Positions 1-34,761 of a DNA stretch of 64,000 nt are shown in pieces. The notes below the pieces were generated by a model. That model saw only the letters and a list, made by a program, of their open reading frames with translations, was not told the DNA's origin and made no database searches. A program made the translations under genes and the position numbers. The DNA is taken from sequence record MK250019.1. One strand, 5' to 3'. Positions within the stretch are counted from its first letter, which is position 1; each line of letters starts with the position of its first letter.

Positions 1-1624
1 GTTCTTGAAGTTTATCTTCATCTGGTACAGAATTCATATCTTTATCGATTTGTGATTTCATCTTATCAATTGCTTTCTTAACATCTTTACGTGCTTGTTC
101 ACGTGCTGCTTTTTCTGTAGGAGACATTTGACCAGAATTTCTACCAGTTTTTGAATTTCCCATAGAACCTTGAGATGATTGGCTCATTTCACCGCTTTGA
201 CCAGATTGTCTATCTTGTGAATCACCAGAATCATTTCCAGATTGTCCTTGATTATCACCATCATCATTTCCTGAATTTCCATATTCATCTGAATTTTCAG
301 AATCATTATTACCAGATTGTGAATCATTTCCAGATTGAGAATCATCATCACCTTGTTCATCAGAATCTGTTCCTGAACCTTTACCCATAGCTTTATCTAA
401 TTCTTTCTGTATCTCATCATTATATGCATCTTGATACTCAGAAGATTTATCACTATTATCTGGCATATCATCCATACCATAATCACTCATAGTATCTGGA
501 TCTGCTGCACTTAAATCTGTATCATCATATGAACCACTTCCTTGACCTTGTTGCCCATCAGATTGATTATTTTGATTACCTGATTGATTCTGTGATCCTT
601 GATTTCCAGATTGTTGTTGAGATGAATCACTCTGCTGACCTTGTGAACCACCTTGACTTTGTGATTGGCTATTATCACCTTGCTGACCACTCTGACCTTG
701 TTGCTGACTTTGTGAAGACTGACTATCACCAGATTGTCCTTGTTGTCCAGATTGCTGTTGAGAATTATTTACCGGATTTTGATTAATTGGTTGTTGTGGT
801 GTAGAAACTTTATTATAGAAATAAGCATCAAAAATAATTTGCCATGGTTCCATTCTAAATCTATCATCAAAAATTCCATCACATTCTTCTGTTGCTCCAG
901 CAAAATATTTTGGAATTTGTTTTTCAAGATCTCGATTTATCTCAGCATCCATTGCAATATTTGCTAATTGATGATTCTTTCCACCTTGTGTTTCTGTTTT
1001 TCTTTCTGCTTGTTCTCTGTGTCTATATATCTGATGATATGCTTCATGACAAATAACATAAAGAACTAATCTAGCCATTGTAATAACTCTATCAGATTGA
1101 GACATACGTTTACCTTGAGACATTAATTCCTTTACTTGTCCTTTCCCTTTATATAAAAGTTGTTCAGCAAATACAGGATTAAATGCTATACGTACTCCAT
1201 CTGATGCAGCTGTATCAATATTAAATGACCACAAAATAGGTTTATTAAATCGACCTAAAATTGGTCCTAATTCTCTGGTTGATGCAGCTTGAGTTTTTGC
1301 CATTTCACAGAAAGATGCAATTTCAGCAGGAATAATTTCTTCTTCTGTTTGTTCTCCTGTTATCGCGTCAGTAATCTTCACTTTAACTGGCACACGCATT
1401 TTAGATACAGGAATAGAATATCCCATATCTTTCATTGTAGCACCTTTATATAACTTTCGCAAATCTAAGCTTTTCTGTTTCATAAGTCTTCCCCATAAAC
1501 CAGCTAATTCACGTTGGTTCTCTTCAGCAGACTTCATTTTAACACCCATTGTATTCTGTACGGTGTTTTTAGAATAAGCTTCGTATACTCGAGTTTTATT
1601 AGTTTTTAACTTTACCTTTACCAT
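1..1624 (-). CDS. DUF2201-type putative metallopeptidase-domain protein (likely VWA-associated), runs off the left edge
   Basis: Open frame from ATG at 1624 to the window edge. It contains TAASDGVRIAFNP, HEAYH (HEXXH) and LANIAMDAEIN, then a long G/Q/S/N/D low-complexity linker. It lies next to a MoxR-like ATPase. Confidence 0.8.
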   Translation of the reverse strand, partial: MVKVKLKTNKTRVYEAYSKNTVQNTMGVKMKSAEENQRELAGLWGRLMKQKSLDLRKLYKGATMKDMGYSIPVSKMRVPVKVKITDAITGEQTEEEIIPAEIASFCEMAKTQAASTRELGPILGRFNKPILWSFNIDTAASDGVRIAFNPVFAEQLLYKGKGQVKELMSQGKRMSQSDRVITMARLVLYVICHEAYHQIYRHREQAERKTETQGGKNHQLANIAMDAEINRDLEKQIPKYFAGATEECDGIFDDRFRMEPWQIIFDAYFYNKVSTPQQPINQNPVNNSQQQSGQQGQSGDSQSSQSQQQGQSGQQGDNSQSQSQGGSQGQQSDSSQQQSGNQGSQNQSGNQNNQSDGQQGQGSGSYDDTDLSAADPDTMSDYGMDDMPDNSDKSSEYQDAYNDEIQKELDKAMGKGSGTDSDEQGDDDSQSGNDSQSGNNDSENSDEYGNSGNDDGDNQGQSGNDSGDSQDRQSGQSGEMSQSSQGSMGNSKTGRNSGQMSPTEKAAREQARKDVKKAIDKMKSQIDKDMNSVPDEDKLQE

Positions 1625-1731
1625 TATGTTAGAAGTAAAAAAATCTTTTTAATATTTATTAAAATAAAAAGAGTGAACATAATTCAAATAATTATATTCA
1701 CTCTTAATATATATTGTTTATTTAATGTTTA

Positions 1732-4518
1732 TTATTTTTTCGCTCTACTCTTAACTGCATTACGTGTTTGATTGAAATCAAACTTCTCTGAACGTGCAAG
1801 AATATTTAATGCAGGTAAAATAGGAACTTTAGATTCTTCAATCTGATGAACATGTGCAATCTATTGAAGACTTGGATCTTTCTTTGTACGAGCAGCTTCA
1901 TATGCAGTAAGGGTCTTTCTAACTGCAACCGTATTATAGAATTCTTTACGTAAATCTGAATCAATATTATTACACTTTTCAAATAATGAAGTTCTCATAT
2001 TATGTGCGATAGAACCAATTTCAGTTTGAATTGAAATCTTAGCAATCCATGATGCAAAGTGCGCATATAATTGAGCAACACGTGAATTAAGTAATGAATT
2101 TACTTTATTACGTAATGTATCAATATCTTGTAATTCTGCATCATCAAATAATAAGTTATGTGTCTTACCATTAATATTAAATGAATATTCTTTAATAAGT
2201 TTCTATGCAGCAGATGAAACCTGACTGTCTGATAATGGTTTAGCATTTTCTAATGTTTCTATATCATTCTTTATATCTTCCTCAAGATCTCCAGGATATG
2301 CAGCTAATACCTATAATGGTAATTCTTTTGCAATACTAGAAATACACTTCCATTTAGAGAATTCTGATGTTGCATACATATCAACTGATAATGGTTTCTT
2401 ATCATCATCATCCTAATATTCAGAAGGCATACTACCAGTTTCCCAAATAGTTGTCATTACCTATGGAGTAAAGATCTTTGAATATTCATTATATGAACGC
2501 CATGCCTTCATAACAGGACCTGTAGCAGTTGCACCATTTGTACCAGTATCATCACCAATTTTATCACGCATATTATCTGTAAAATATGTCATAAAAATAT
2601 TATAACGTCCGCGTATACCAATTGAACTATTACCAGTTGGATCCAATTCATCAAGACCACCATGTTCATCAACCCACCAGTCCCAATAATCATCATCAAG
2701 TTCATTTAATGCATCAATTAAAACATTTGGAAGAATTCCACCATAATATTCTTTATATGTATTTCCTTCATCATCTGTTTTTTCTTCTACAGAAGAATCA
2801 ATTAATTTCTAATAATATTCTTTTCCAGAAATACCATCAGGATTCTCTTCAAACAAATCAATTAAAGCATCTTTATAGAATGGTCCAATTGTATTTGCCC
2901 ATGTACGAGGAGTAACCATACGTTTTGTACGTAAAATAATTTCCTGATTAAGAACATCACTAATCTTAGATAAAGAATCATTCTGATCTTCATGTGCTCT
3001 CTTATCTGCCTCTGGATTATCAAGCATATCATCATATCCACCATTTACAATAGTAGAATACCATACATAATCATCTGAAGCTTCAATAAAATCTGTAATA
3101 AATGGTGGTACATTAGCTTCATGTGTCAAAGGATCAACTTCACGTGCCCATTCAATCCATTCAGTCTTTGAAGGAACATATGTATAATGTGTAAAACGGT
3201 TTGTTTGTGCAGCAGTAGGGAAATATCTTCTATCTTCTGATTCTGCTTCATTCTCATCAATAGAACGGTTAGATGCAAGAACAAAACCCCATTTAGATGC
3301 AACAACATAATTATCACCAAATTTATGATCATTAACAATACCCATGATAATATTTTGAACATTAGGTTCAACACGTGAATACTCATCCATAAATACAACA
3401 CCACCTTCAAAAGGATGTCCATTAGCAGATGTAATTTCTCCTGTATTATCAGTTGAAAGGAATCTACATGTATTACAGAAATAATCACGTTTCTTATTCT
3501 CTTCTGGATCTGATGTATTAAGATATACTGGTAACCAAGTCTTAGGTGTATCTGTAAATCCTTCACGTGTATACATTTGTGATTTCTTTTTTGCTGAACC
3601 AGAATCAAGACCCCATCCAATTTCACGGGTAGCATCACGAGGTAATGTCCAGTTTTCTATTGTATAACCAGCAAGCATAATAACTTCAAGATTCAAGTTA
3701 ATTGCTTTATATTTAGCATTAGCCATATCTTTAATAGTTTGCTTAATGATTGCAGTTTTACCAATACCAGGAGCACCCCATATAAGGAATGGAACAACAT
3801 CAGAGTGTCCGCCAAGAGGACCAGAAATTTGTTCACGAATATTAGTCTTAAGCTTAGAAATTAATTGCTTAGAATTAATAGCAACACCAAAATGGCTGAA
3901 CCCATTACCATCTTTAACTGCATCATATGAATATACAGCTTCATTTAATGCTTTATATAATTTTGTTGGTTTATAATATGTTTCATTAACATATTTAATA
4001 GATTCAGAAATAGTTTCATCTGTTGTTCCTGCACGTTTAATAACACGACTCCAGAAATTAACAATATCTCTACGGTCTTTTGCTATACCTTCTGCAAATG
4101 CCTAATCAATAGTCATACCACCAGTACCTGCAGTTTTCTTTAATGATGCAGATGGTGCAAAATAAACACCCTTTGGTAACATACCTTTTGATGCTTTAAT
4201 TGCTAGGTTACCGACATTATTTAATGACCATGAAACAACCTAATTAGCTGCATCATCAACAAGTGCAATAAAACCTCTTACTTTATCAGTAATATATGAA
4301 GCAACTTTCTTTCCGTATTCTTTAATCTTATCAATAAATCCTTCATTAATCAAAATCTTATTCAATGGTATATTATTTTCGACATAATTATCATCGAAAC
4401 GCATTGAACATGTATCATTTGATTCATTAATTGATAAAAGAATACCATTAATCTTATACTATGTACCTTTAACACTATGTACAAGAGTTGCTGGTATATT
4501 CAATCTAGTTTTTACCAT
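1732..4518 (-). CDS. MoxR-like AAA+ ATPase with long N- and C-terminal extensions (928 aa, 9 in-frame TAG)
   Basis: Walker A WGAPGIGKT, Walker B VVFMDE, LASNR and AQTNRF motifs. Track ORFs 2809..3726 and 2461..2646 are in one frame and join by TAG readthrough to TAA at 1732. Confidence 0.85.
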
Positions 4519-31176: not shown

Positions 31177-31249
31177 GGTCCGTCTGGTGTAATTGGTAAC
31201 ATGGCAGATTGTGGTTCTGCAGTACAGGGTTCGAGTCCCTAACGTGACC
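31177..31249 (+). tRNA. trnH: tRNA-His(GTG) with irregular acceptor stem
   Basis: G-1, D-arm GTGT/ACAT, anticodon arm GCAGA-TTGTGGT-TCTGC, T-loop TTCGAGT and discriminator C. The acceptor pairs only with a bulge. Confidence 0.8.
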
Positions 31250-31318
31250 CAATTTAATTTTTAAGTAAACTATTAATATAGTTCTTAATATAATTATAAG
31301 AATATTTTATATTAATAT

Positions 31319-32320
31319 ATGGAAATTAAATAGTTTACAGATGATGCATTAAAACATGTATTTGAAATATGTACATCAACAATGAATATATTGGAATTAT
31401 TAGGTTATGAACCATATAAAATAAGAGGATAGAAATGTAAAGAAATATTAAAAATATATGCTAATTAGATTGGTGTCAATATAGAAGATTATAAATCAAA
31501 TAATATAAAATTTAGGATATATAATGAATTACATCCTGTATGTAAAACATGTGGTAAGGGCTTAACATATTTTCAATATAAGCAAAAATAGGAATTTTGT
31601 TGTTCATCATGTGCAGCAACTTATAATAATAAACATAGGATATTATCAAAAAATATACTTAAAAAATTTTCATAGGAACAAAACATAGAAGAACTATAGT
31701 CTAGAAAACGAAATTATGTATTAAATACAGAGTTAATTAAACAAGGTAAAATCTTAAATGATAAAAATATTACATATAAAGAACATTATATAGATATAAC
31801 CAAACTTGGCGTACATATATGTCAAGTATGCGGAAATACATTTATACCTTCAATTACAGTAAAGGGAAATATATCTAAGTCTACTACATGTTCTGATATA
31901 TGTCATAAATAGTTAGTAAGTGAAAAATCAAAATAGGCACTTTAGAAACTTATTAATGACGGTCGGCATAAAGGCTGGATGTCTAGAAATATTACAAGTT
32001 ATCCAGAAAATTTTTGGATTAATGTATTAAATAATAATCATATAGTTTTTACATGTGAATTTAAAGTAAAAAAACGTTGTGGATATTATTATTTCTTGGA
32101 TTTTTTTATAGAGCATAATGGATATAAAATTGATTTAGAAATAGATGGACAACAACATAAGTATAGGAAAGAACATGATATTAAGAGAGATGAATATCTT
32201 ACATCATTAAATTATATCGTTTATAGGATTGAGTGGAATACTATAAATACGGAAAATGGAAAATTATTGATGAAAGAAAAAATTGATAATTTTTTAAATT
32301 GGTTTAATAATTTAGAGTAA
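31319..32320 (+). CDS. zinc-ribbon + DUF559/Vsr-like PD-(D/E)XK endonuclease inside the tRNA array (333 aa, about 9 TAG)
   Basis: CKTCGK...FCCSSCAA, CQVCG...CSDIC and YFLDF...LEIDGQQH...DIKRDEYL..L.Y.VYRIEW. A TAAACT-N17-TATAAT promoter lies at 31266. Confidence 0.82.
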
Positions 32321-32749: not shown

Positions 32750-33215
32750 ATGTTAATTGGATGAACAGTTAATAATTAATAATTAATAATAAAAATACTA
32801 TTAAAATGTGGGGTTTTGAGTGCCCATCATTTAAAGAGTTTCGAGAAGAAGACATTGTATGTAAAAGCATTAAGTTTCATTTAGCTGATGAAATGTAGTC
32901 AAGCGTGATGGTATCGATGTACATGGGTCCATCCGTATAACTTCGGGGAATCATAAGCATTAATCTTGGAGAGTACAGTTTTTAGTCTGAAATGACGAAT
33001 TTTCCTACTGGTTGCTCAATATGACATTAAGAGTCGGAGATAATTATTTGTAAGTTCCACAATTACAAGAGGAAAATGGAATTAAGTTGTCGGAATAACG
33101 TGATTATTCTATGTGTGAGTAAGAGAATGAAAGTAGCATTATATGTATGGTGTACGTATGCATATAGAAACAAAGCAAATAATAGCCCTTAGAGAATTTG
33201 CCGAGAAAAGGACAT
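32750..33215 (+). ncRNA. candidate large structured non-coding RNA
   Basis: GC-elevated tract lacking any convincing ORF, with several hairpins and a nested helix. A TAGACT-N17-TATACA promoter-like site lies just upstream (32719). Confidence 0.4.
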
Positions 33216-33233
33216 TAATAGTATTTATAATTT

Positions 33234-33392
33234 GCGGGTATAGCACAATGGTTAGTGTGTCGGTCTTCCATACAAGAATAAACTTGTAAAATTAAACTAT
33301 ATGCTAATAATAAATGTGGTATTATAAAATAAGAGTTCGAATCTCTTGCATATAGCAAACCGAAAATGTCGGTTCGATTCCGATTACCCGCT
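33234..33392 (+). tRNA. trnG: tRNA-Gly(TCC) interrupted by an approximately 87-nt intron after position 37
   Basis: 5' exon GCGGGTA..TCGGT-CTTCCA. The 3' exon A-ACCGA..GTCGG-TTCGATT-CCGAT-TACCCGC-T gives a canonical cloverleaf once 33271-33357 is removed. Confidence 0.88.
33297..33356 (+). ncRNA. D-armless tRNA-like element nested in the tRNA-Gly intron (TGT pseudo-anticodon)
   Basis: CTATATGC/GCATATAG acceptor-like stem, ATAATA-AATGTGG-TATTAT hairpin and AAGAG-TTCGAAT-CTCTT T-arm. Confidence 0.6.
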
Positions 33393-33692
33393 CAAAGATA
33401 AAATTAGGTATACATAGTTTTGTATCGAAGCTTTATATTACCATTAGTTGTAATATTCAAATCGTTCGTTGACATGGTTATTCCGTGATGTTAGTAGTAA
33501 GTTATAATTAATTTATAGCAAACGGAATATTAATAAAAACGTACTCGGCGTTTAAGTTGAATGTACCACGCTGCCCGTATTGTTGACATTTAATTAAGTA
33601 TTTAATTAAGTTGAAACATATGTTTAAAAAACTTATGGTACCACGAGTGTTTTCTACGTCGTTTCACTCATTTTTTGGATATAATAATATAT

Positions 33693-33826
33693 GAGAGTCA
33701 TAACAGCAAATTTAGTTCTATTGTTTATTGGGATAACATAAGACTCTTGAATCAATTATATTATGGGAGATATTACAGCAAATTATTATTTAGGATCATA
33801 CTTTTAATATGAAATTCTTGTCTCCT
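33693..33826 (+). repeat. two tandem approximately 60-nt stem-closed elements sharing ACAGCAAATT
   Basis: GAGAGTC-ATAACAGCAAATT...GACTCTT (33693-33748) and GGAGAT-ATTACAGCAAATT...GTCTCC (33766-33825). Confidence 0.6.
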
Positions 33827-33834
33827 GTTTATTT

Positions 33835-33914
33835 GGGTAAATGCCTGAGTGGTCGAAGGGAATGATCTGCAAAATCATTATTATACGTCGTGTGTTCGAA
33901 TCACACTTTACCCT
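33835..33914 (+). tRNA. trnC: tRNA-Cys(GCA) with extended variable region
   Basis: Acceptor GGGTAAA/TTTACCC, discriminator T, anticodon arm ATGAT-CTGCAAA-ATCAT and T-arm GTGTG-TTCGAAT-CACAC. Confidence 0.88.
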
Positions 33915-34241
33915 CTAATATAAAATATTTCCGTGGTATACAGCACGTAAAAAGAGGTTGACTTGTATATTCTATAGACCTACTGTATAATAATATATAT
34001 GATGTATATGTGAAACACCATGTTCTATTAAGAGTTCATTAACTGAGGTTAATTTTGAATTGCACTGATATTAGATGCATAATATATAATGAATATAACG
34101 ACGGTACTGTGAAATGACTATTATTTTTAGTTGCTTGGAAACGGCGTACGAAGTTTTTATAATAGTGGAAGTAATGATAAAACAGTTAAATGTAAATCTT
34201 TCTGAGACAATGGGGACAACTTGTAGTAAGAGAGTATTTTT

Positions 34242-34345
34242 GTTGATATAGTTTAATGGGAAAACACCCAAATCCCAGGGATAAGAGATAATACTTTGAA
34301 ATAGGTATTAGAAGATTTTAGATGGTTCGATTCCATTTATCAACT
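34242..34345 (+). ncRNA. tRNA-like RNA with canonical acceptor/D/T arms and an aberrant, expanded anticodon region
   Basis: GTTGATA/TATCAAC acceptor, GTTT-AATGGGA-AAAC D-arm and GATGG-TTCGATT-CCATT T-arm. No canonical 5-bp/7-nt anticodon arm is present. Confidence 0.65.
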
Positions 34346-34355
34346 CAAATTAATG

Positions 34356-34475
34356 AAGTGTGTAGTTTAATTGGTAAAATATCCTTTGAATAGGACTGTG
34401 CGCAGATAGAACATAATGTTAGTCATATTAATCGCATTATTGATAATGATGTTGGTTCGATTCCAACGACACTTC
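34356..34475 (+). ncRNA. tRNA-like RNA with canonical D/T arms, truncated anticodon hairpin and long insert
   Basis: AAGTGT/ACACTT acceptor, GTTT-AATTGGTA-AAAT D-arm, TCCT-TTGAAT-AGGA hairpin, a 50-60-nt insert and GTTGG-TTCGATT-CCAAC T-arm. Confidence 0.65.
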
Positions 34476-34761
34476 CTAATAAATAAAAAGATCTCGGTAA
34501 TTAGATAAAACATTATATGAGTGAAGCAACTCACCATAACTGCAGATAAATGAGTGAGGGACATAAGAGTGTATGAAGAAAGATGGACTATGGACACCAC
34601 CATATAATTGCGTTTTCAATAATAGTAAAGTAAACTTTAGTATAAGTTCCATTAACGCTAAAATAGAAACATTGTTATTGAAGTCTACTATGCGTGCGAT
34701 GGTTGAATGAAACCATTGTAGTTCTAAGGCATTGTAAAACGTTTTATTTATTAATTTTTAT

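Follow-up and report, generated by a model that had tools for sequence, protein, structure and literature searches.

Which kind of RNA is encoded by the two oversized, transfer RNA (tRNA)-like elements in the tRNA cluster of Prevotella phage Lak-A2? Huge phages carry many tRNA genes, a large share of which has been reported as 'undetermined' or 'pseudo'. The stretch of DNA analysed here (the window) comprises 64,000 nucleotides (nt) of sequence record MK250019.1 and has the same coordinates as the phage genome. An earlier note on this stretch, made from the sequence alone, had described the two adjacent elements, here named E1 and E2, as 104 and 120 nt long, and its borders on the plus strand (34242-34345 and 34356-34475) proved to be exact. 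Lak megaphages were described by Devoto et al. (2019; PMC6784885), who list both elements without analysis in their Supplementary Table S2B (tRNAscan-SE): E1 as "Gly CCC" with 39.69 bits, E2 as "Pseudo TTG" with 25.68 and, in Lak-B genomes, as "Undet ???". The four Lak-A2 introns treated in that study (Tyr, Phe, Thr and Gly-UCC) do not include E1 or E2, and a structural analysis of the two elements was not found in our literature search.

As set out below, E1 and E2 are genuine tRNA derivatives that occur as single copies, are transcribed and stand under structural constraint, and their extra sequence is very probably a functional domain and not an intron.

A tRNA-like upper half combined with a rebuilt lower half

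E1 was matched by the Rfam tRNA family RF00005 with 38.9 bits, whereby model positions 1-71 were covered and 43 bases stayed unaligned at the place of the anticodon arm. E2, searched alone, reached 32.3 bits (34.7 bits for the C25 allele of a sister genome) with 63 unaligned bases between D arm and T arm. Both elements thus lie above the gathering threshold of 29 bits, and tRNA was the only Rfam family that matched them. Standard ARAGORN missed E1 as well as E2 and did not find a transfer-messenger RNA (tmRNA) either.

Both elements consist of a 7-base-pair (bp) acceptor stem, U8, a 4-bp D stem with GG in the loop and a 5-bp T stem with the loop UUCGAUU, giving an acceptor/T configuration of 7/5. 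U8/A14 and a 15-48 partner are also retained in both, so that the features by which processing factors and elbow-binding factors recognise a tRNA are present. The acceptor stem of E2 contains a conserved G.G at 7-66, and the G preceding its position 1 could pair with C73. None of the tRNA genes in the cluster encodes CCA. Neither element shows the 5-bp anticodon stem and 7-nt loop of RF00005; the best local folds (RNAfold) have 3 bp and an 8-nt loop in E1, 4 bp and a 6-nt loop in E2. Most of the extra bases are found 3' of this short hairpin, that is at the position of the variable arm and not in the anticodon loop. In E1 a single A separates the short hairpin from a 5-bp stem, which according to RNAfold is followed by a 2-versus-5-nt asymmetric loop and a hairpin. 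In E2 hairpin 2 directly follows hairpin 1, and conserved AUAGA, a mini-hairpin (AAC...GUU) and hairpin 3 come next. The description given in the earlier note, namely retention of acceptor, GG D arm and TTCGATT T arm together with replacement of the anticodon arm by hairpin-forming inserts whose simple excision restores no clean canonical arm, holds for both elements and agrees with the unaligned bases in Rfam and with the ARAGORN results. Table 1 gives an overview of the parts of both RNAs.

Table 1 Features of E1 and E2 in the window (NNN, loop triplet)
Feature	Position	Strand	Evidence
E1, tRNA-shaped RNA, by sequence derived from tRNA-Gly, 104 nt, single copy	34242-34345	+	Rfam, covariation, covariance model R1
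E1 acceptor 5' strand (34242-34248), U8 A9, D arm (34251-34265, loop AAUGGGA), A26	34242-34266	+	
E1 short hairpin, CCC / 8-nt loop AAAU-NNN-A / GGG, at anticodon-arm position	34267-34280	+	RNAfold
E1 loop triplet in U-NNN-A context, CCC in Lak-A2	34274-34276	+	strain comparison
E1 extra arm with kink-turn signature	34282-34320	+	RNAfold, conservation, covariation, kink-turn consensus
E1 extra-arm stem, UAAGA paired with UUUUA (UUUUG in Lak-B)	34282-34286, 34316-34320	+	
E1 GA (34287-34288) opposite bulge GAA (34311-34313) and GA (34314-34315)	34287-34288, 34311-34315	+	
E1 capping hairpin	34289-34310	+	RNAfold
E1 T arm GAUGG/UUCGAUU/CCAUU, acceptor 3' strand, U73, no encoded CCA	34321-34345	+	
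E2, second tRNA-shaped RNA, 120 nt, no readable anticodon	34356-34475	+	Rfam, compensatory changes
E2 hairpin 1, UCCU/UUGAAU/AGGA, 4 bp, 6-nt loop (UUGAGU in Lak-B), at anticodon-arm position	34382-34395	+	
E2 hairpin 2, CUG-UGCG-CAG (CUCU-GACG-AGAG in Lak-B), then AUA-GA	34396-34410	+	one pair changed on both sides
E2 hairpin 3, about 11 bp with bulge, abutting the T stem	34422-34450	+	RNAfold
E2 T arm GUUGG/UUCGAUU/CCAAC, acceptor 3' strand, C73	34451-34475	+	

Conservation and covariation of E1 and E2

Exact patterns were used to scan IMG/VR, JGI/ENA metagenomes and GTDB genomes for homologues, and BLAST was applied to GenBank phages. In these collections E1 occurs only in Lak-type contigs and in one 180-kb phage, E2 only in Lak; the remaining pattern matches from IMG/VR, the metagenomes and GTDB were located within protein genes and were rejected as chance. 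The orthologues compared stem from Lak-A1, Lak-C1, Lak-B1, IMG/VR contigs, metagenome contigs and locus L006 of phage G002, a CheckV-complete gut phage of 180 kb that is unrelated to Lak and has human-gut "Bacteriophage sp." records as its closest GenBank relatives. No E1 was found in MT835539, a relative of G002. Three deep lineages are represented for E1 (Lak-A, Lak-B and L006) and two for E2 (Lak-A and Lak-B), with an overall identity of 73-79% across the compared lineages.

In 10 distinct E1 sequences 98% of the cells pair, and 12 of the 30 pairs have changed on both sides (acceptor 4/7, T stem 4/5, insert hairpin 4/6), the D stem being invariant. For the acceptor, D and T helices by themselves, with eight pairs changed on both sides, 100% of the cells pair. 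This level of covariation was reached by none of 500 shuffles, and all slid controls remained far below it. The seven E2 sequences gave a similar picture: 98.4% of the cells pair, and four pairs changed on both sides (6-67 in the acceptor, 49-65 and 51-63 in the T stem and one pair of hairpin 2). The stem of E2 hairpin 1 is invariant and hence offers no covariation test; at the base of hairpin 3 a MAFFT alignment shows U-A and C-G pairs kept in Lak-B plus an extension, and no compensatory change. Folding-energy z-scores were weak (-1.9 for E1, -0.3 for E2), a measure that is uninformative in AT-rich sequence. Random decay is excluded by the compensatory changes in the E1 and E2 helices. The outcome that the earlier note had named as refuting, decay of the orthologues without covariation, was thus not observed in the acceptor, T or insert hairpins.

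The flanks of the insert are the most conserved part of E1. A 5' block of 22 nt (ACCCAAAU...AGGGAUAAGAGA), including the loop triplet CCC, and a 3' block of 9 nt (GAAGAUUUU) are identical in Lak-A, Lak-B and L006, and stem and loop flanks of the short hairpin are invariant across the three lineages, whereas sequence differences have accumulated in the acceptor and T stems of these RNAs.

Transcription of the locus

Four metatranscriptome runs were available as assembled contigs. Unspliced contigs span 33789-34761 in X14 (depth 194), 34058-34697 in X15 (depth 226) and 33367-34495 in X12 (depth 116); in X3 the depth over E1 and E2 is about 11-17. Coding DNA from about 34950 onward, only some 500 bases away, has a depth of 0-16. 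Carry-over of DNA would give an even depth, and the contrast with the coding DNA thus indicates transcription. Joints inside E1 or E2 were present in none of the four runs, although ordinary RNA-seq captures mature tRNAs poorly.

The cluster has the order His, Pro, Arg, Arg, Gly(UCC) with an insert, Cys, E1, E2, Met. E1 and E2 lie within a tRNA array, and E1 does so in a second phage lineage as well. Nearby protein genes encode a phosphoheptose-isomerase-like protein, a phosphoribosyl pyrophosphate synthetase and an HNH endonuclease, the last of which some strains lack; RNA-processing genes were not found among the genes neighbouring E1 and E2. At other places the Lak genome contains genes for release factor 2, ribosomal protein S1, an Rnl2 ligase and a CCA-adding enzyme, whereas aminoacyl-tRNA synthetases are not encoded (supplement of Devoto et al. 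2019, PMC6784885).

Origin of E1 and variation of its loop triplet

The covariance model R1 of E1 gave one strong match per genome (98-128 bits). Its next-best match was the phage's own canonical tRNA-Gly(UCC) with 39.3 bits, and other tRNAs did not exceed 31.5 bits. G1-C72 and U73 are present in all E1 sequences; C2-G71 is found in Lak-B and L006, with U-A at this place in Lak-A. The identity set of bacterial tRNA-Gly, as worked out in E. coli, comprises U73, G1-C72, C2-G71, C35 and C36. A CC of the C35/C36 type is part of the E1 consensus triplet and is lost in three strain variants. Because of the acceptor bases, the U-CCC-A loop and tRNA-Gly(UCC) as nearest relative of R1, E1 is regarded as a tRNA-Gly paralogue, and on these sequence features its descent from tRNA-Gly is very likely. 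An ordinary tRNA-Gly(UCC) gene is also present in G002. The possibility that E1 is a mobile repeat was rejected: its 5' block is unique in the window and E1 is single-copy in each genome.

The loop triplet reads CCC in Lak-A, Lak-B and L006, CCA in L051, UCC in L056 and CUC in L068. A further form, CAC, occurs in the RNA-run contig of X3 (34275 C>A). These are the only variable positions within a block that is otherwise invariant in the three lineages. An alignment of nine Lak-A-type sequences has 21 variable columns out of 329, and under random placement a run of three adjacent ones is expected with P ~0.07; counting the fourth independent change in X3, hypervariability of the triplet is suggestive, not proven. 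CCC is kept in the long term and changed in the short term, which possibly reflects either a favoured state from which switching is tolerated or adaptive, or repeated inactivation.

The extra arm of E1 as a putative kink-turn

The bulged strand of the E1 extra arm carries the letters GAAGA, which we take to be those of Kt-7. The order helix, 3-nt bulge, G.A/A.G pairs and helix is shared by E1 and known kink-turns such as Kt-7 of 23S ribosomal RNA and those of box C/D RNAs, SAM-I and T-box leaders. The consensus was taken from PMC5061560 and PMC4382518, the former of which defines a standard kink-turn by a canonical helix, a 3-nt bulge, G.A followed by A.G pairs and a second helix. At the sequence level E1 conforms to this definition (UAAGA-GA-hairpin-GAA-GA-UUUUA). 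The pairs adjoining the bulge covary (U-A/A-U and A-U/G-C/G-U). The capping hairpin, 22-40 nt long, is free in sequence and retains its helix (UAAUAC/GUAUUA in Lak-A, GAUAAU/AUUAUC in L068, UG...CA in Lak-B, AG...CU in L006). Taken together, the extra arm of E1 is somewhat more probably a kink-turn than not, as judged by its match to the consensus.

E1 differs from the known kink-turns in the placement of the signature in the extra arm of a tRNA-shaped RNA and in the nature of the pair that follows the G.A pairs (3b.3n), which would be U-A and thus Watson-Crick. In PMC4382518 such 3b.3n pairs are reported to block kink-turn folding by metal ions alone. Consequently a protein or tertiary partner is predicted for the E1 arm. 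No description of a kink-turn within the extra arm of a tRNA-shaped RNA was found in our literature search.

A similar arrangement in E2 (34394-34410) follows the order GA-CUG(UGCG)CAG-AUA-GA, kept in Lak-A and Lak-B and resembling the GA-hairpin-NNN-GA order of E1. The 5' GA of this element doubles as part of hairpin 1, and in L068 an A replaces the key G at 34409, which breaks the consensus. We therefore treat the E2 sequence as a candidate kink-turn only.

As a separate observation, the capping-hairpin loop of E1 in Lak-A (34293-34305, CUUUGAAAUAGG) is nearly the same as E2 hairpin 1 (34384-34394, CUUUGAAUAGG), and unrelated sequence is found at this place of E1 in Lak-B and L006. The resemblance may be due to an exchange of modules or to chance.

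The extra sequence is probably not an intron

The earlier note had offered as one alternative that E1 and E2 are tRNAs with atypical introns. Short introns of this kind would be removed by a nuclease together with the phage Rnl2 ligase. Lak does encode this ligase, 'enigmatic introns' have been published for its tRNA-Tyr, Phe, Thr and Gly(UCC) genes, and related gut phages contain tRNA-model matches with 12-15 extra bases in the anticodon loop. Nevertheless, neither a parse by hand nor ARAGORN with introns revealed an excision that leaves a 5-bp stem and a 7-nt loop. With introns of 0-200 nt allowed, ARAGORN produced only forced Ile(AAT) and Asn(GTT) solutions with 4-bp or mismatched stems and giant variable loops, and a search by hand for 39-43 partners of positions 27-31 was negative in Lak-A, Lak-B and L006. 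Bulge-helix-bulge and group I introns were rejected as well, the inserts being too short, the motif absent and tRNA the sole Rfam match.

E1 and E2 share with the Lak intron tRNAs (PMC6784885) the genomes and clusters in which they occur, an oversized match to the tRNA model and inserts that are conserved across cohorts. The Lak introns, for which the Tyr, Phe and Thr introns of Table S6 and the Gly(UCC) insert of the window were compared, have a different build: they measure 79-114 nt, start one base after the anticodon (after position 37) and combine a 5' hairpin, AUUAAAUUAAACU and a nested tRNA-like fold, features that E1 and E2 lack. Furthermore, their removal leaves a canonical tRNA, and they are absent in some strains. 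In contrast to the polymorphic Gly(UCC) insert, an insert-less allele of E1 or E2, the intron-less orthologue that the earlier note had proposed to look for, was found in none of about 20 contigs and genomes. The four metatranscriptomes contained full-length unspliced contigs and no spliced one. Together with the variable-arm position of the extra bases and the conservation of the E1 insert flanks beyond all other parts of the RNA, these results leave the intron alternative unsupported and very unlikely.

tRNA-Gly(UCC) itself (33234-33392) contains an insert of 87-89 nt after the anticodon, which includes a T-arm-like hairpin and belongs to the published Lak intron family. In Lak-A1 and in the strain of one RNA run an insert-less Gly(UCC) allele with a different anticodon stem was found; this different stem points to a difference at the DNA level and not to splicing. 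The idea of a single tRNA-remodelling or decoy system that unites E1 and E2 with the Gly intron and the ACAGCAA units could therefore not be upheld: the Gly(UCC) insert is a presence/absence polymorphism of another, published intron family, and the count of the ACAGCAA motif in the window is not above chance. Two adjacent stem-closed units (33694-33750 and 33766-33827) both carry AYAACAGCAAAUU. The assignment of 33766-33827 to Dicty_Class_I_RNA was rejected, as its 33.7 bits are under the gathering score of 41.5.

Further oversized tRNA-model matches were noticed. Anticodon loops with 12-15 extra bases occur in G002 (L124, minus strand, 2415-2335 and 1904-1821) and in L125 (MT835539.1, 2019-2102), and a conserved CAUUUCGAGAAGGUCAUUGGUUCGAAUCC stretch is common to two of these matches; it may be that phage tRNA genes carry short insertions more widely. 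Another match, the third oversized one besides E1 and E2, has 101 nt (G001:C1:197602-197702, L077 403-503, corresponding to Lak-A2 135108-135208) and is listed as 'Ile AAT' in the Devoto table. Its build resembles that of class II tRNAs: the extra arm forms a 7-bp hairpin, and the anticodon loop has 9 nt and no standard U33 context.

Comparison with known tRNA-like RNAs

The extra domains of E1 and E2 are located before the T stem and are combined with a canonical core and a location in tRNA arrays, as in class II tRNAs (Leu, Ser, bacterial Tyr and Sec). The variable arm of class II tRNAs comprises 10-24 nt, whereas the extra domain measures 39-57 nt in E1 and about 55-62 nt in E2, and E1 adds the asymmetric GA loop. 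Moreover, class II tRNAs combine the extra arm with a normal anticodon arm, which is abnormal in E1 and E2, and U73 (E1) and C73 (E2) do not fit Leu, Ser or Tyr.

Allo-tRNAs, as characterized by Mukai et al. (2016; PMC5389517), resemble E1 in their odd geometry, their long extra arm and the differing anticodons of relatives. They are defined there by 8/4 or 9/3 branches, unlike the 7/5 configuration of E1 and E2, which differ from them also in that the upper half is normal and the lower half is abnormal. The tRNA-like domains of tmRNA and of the YrlA Y RNAs of bacteria and phages (PMC4201824) retain acceptor, T arm and D-like features, have a replaced anticodon arm and are acted on by tRNA enzymes. 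In YrlA, however, the tRNA-like part is internal and the ends form the Ro-binding stem (PMC4201824), whereas the ends of E1 and E2 form the acceptor stem. A reading frame and the absence of a D stem set tmRNA apart from E1 and E2.

Possible function of E1 and E2

The short arms, which have 3 bp and an 8-nt loop in E1, 4 bp and a 6-nt loop in E2, make normal decoding on the ribosome unlikely, and for this reason we favour a role as tRNA mimics. That E1 and E2 are functional, transcribed tRNA derivatives whose rebuilt lower half serves such a role is plausible, unproven and in our estimate about an even bet. Host RNase P and RNase Z together with the CCA-adding enzyme of the phage would trim both RNAs like tRNAs, which would yield stable L-shaped molecules. 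The rebuilt lower half would be the working part, with the loop triplet and a sharply bent arm shown to a protein or RNA partner, and the mimic would occupy or recruit a tRNA-binding factor.

A more specific version, which we consider unlikely, sees E1 as a programmable mimic in which the kink-turn arm and the tRNA body form a protein handle and the triplet an address that is retuned from strain to strain. The triplet (CCC, UCC, CCA, CUC or CAC) might then pair with anticodons or codons of its partners, or might bait host nucleases directed at anticodons. Alternatively, charging could be set by the extra arm, which would leave the anticodon free to switch, with a recoding of codons that differs from one strain to the next. 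On this view E2 represents another such device.

Several points weigh against a mimic. CCC is retained with U33-like and A37-like neighbours and with the Gly identity bases, as in a real tRNA-Gly(CCC). The CCC/GGG stem, the stem of the kink-turn and its G.A pairs are invariant in the E1 sequences, and with the critical bases fixed covariation gives no test of the kink-turn. A protein of the L7Ae family (TIGR03677) was not found in a 416-kb Lak contig (76% complete), in G002 or in three Bacteroidota genomes, in a search at E<=0.01 in which the B. thetaiotaomicron control was silent too. The RNA data were assembled contigs, which show no RNA ends and drop rare (spliced) forms.

The main rival is that E1 is a decoder tRNA-Gly(CCC), charged by the host glycyl-tRNA synthetase and reading GGG with a variable arm of the class II type, with E2 as a second odd decoder. 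Variable arms of class II tRNAs are tolerated by ribosomes, and this explanation would account for the variable-arm position of the extra domain, the published Gly CCC call, the Gly identity bases (C2-G71 in Lak-B and L006) with the U-CCC-A context, the presence of CCC in three deep lineages and the phage tRNA-Gly as nearest relative of E1. It is at odds with the anticodon stems of both elements, which deviate from 5 bp and 7 nt, and with the triplets CCA, CUC and CAC of single strains, which would remove C35/C36 as Gly identity bases. A canonical tRNA-Gly(UCC) is already present in Lak and G002, GGG should be rare at 26% G+C, and E2 has no readable anticodon ('Pseudo TTG' in Lak-A, 'Undet' in Lak-B). 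We thus regard a decoder as doubtful, clearly behind a mimic and ahead of the smaller rivals, to which the introns discussed above also belong.

Among these, E1 and E2 could serve as punctuation marks at which RNase P and RNase Z cut the transcript from tRNA-Cys to tRNA-Met (33916-34761) into small RNAs. The non-coding stretch of 850 bases is block-conserved between Lak-A and Lak-B and contains more covarying hairpins; single RNA contigs span it, and their ends lie near tRNA borders, for instance at 34761, one base before tRNA-Met. Punctuation, however, needs only an acceptor and a T arm, which leaves unexplained that conservation is stronger in the insert blocks than in the tRNA stems, and E1 recurs in G002 in another context, beside ordinary tRNAs. 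Such a role is quite improbable in our view. Least likely of all, and hardly to be reckoned with, are decaying tRNA pseudogenes. The tRNAscan-SE labels of E2 ('Pseudo', 'Undet') and the unremarkable folding energies would fit decay; it is contradicted by covariation, that is by compensatory changes in every testable helix and by pairing kept in 98% of the cells in spite of the sequence divergence, as well as by the invariant insert blocks.

Irrespective of the role of E1 and E2, at least some of the 'undetermined' or 'pseudo' tRNA genes of huge phages seem to be neither junk nor intron-bearing, but to encode conserved RNAs in which the upper half of a tRNA serves as a chassis and the lower half has evolved anew. 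Should the kink-turn arm and the variation of the triplet between strains be confirmed, E1 would represent a natural RNA device built on a tRNA scaffold, carried by a virus whose host is a dominant bacterium of the human gut. This would bear on the conflict between phage and host over tRNAs, on translation in alternatively coded phages and on the annotation of tRNAs in metagenomes.

Other features of the tRNA cluster

In the non-coding sequences on both sides of E1 and E2 (33916-34241 and 34476-34761) Lak-A and Lak-B share blocks of 100% identity, one of which (34170-34241) immediately precedes E1, and a hairpin near 34697-34718 shows compensatory changes. The two elements are thus probably surrounded by additional small structured RNAs or by processing signals.

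Between tRNA-His and tRNA-Pro lies the open reading frame of the HNH endonuclease (phrog_1271, 31319-32320, read with TAG as Q), which in the strains of three RNA runs is swapped for about 85 other bases. This replacement suggests that a mobile homing endonuclease has inserted into the tRNA cluster. The acceptor of tRNA-His(GUG) (31177-31250) is poorly paired in the ARAGORN prediction, and Rfam matches only positions 8-63 of the model with 31.7 bits.

Upstream of tRNA-Gly(UCC) a non-coding stretch (32750-33232) is 91% identical between Lak-A2 and Lak-B1. In three metatranscriptomes the RNA contigs over this stretch exceed all others in depth by a wide margin (369-3020). It is a candidate for a non-coding RNA of high abundance and may be among the 'highly expressed intergenic regions' of Devoto et al. 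(2019).

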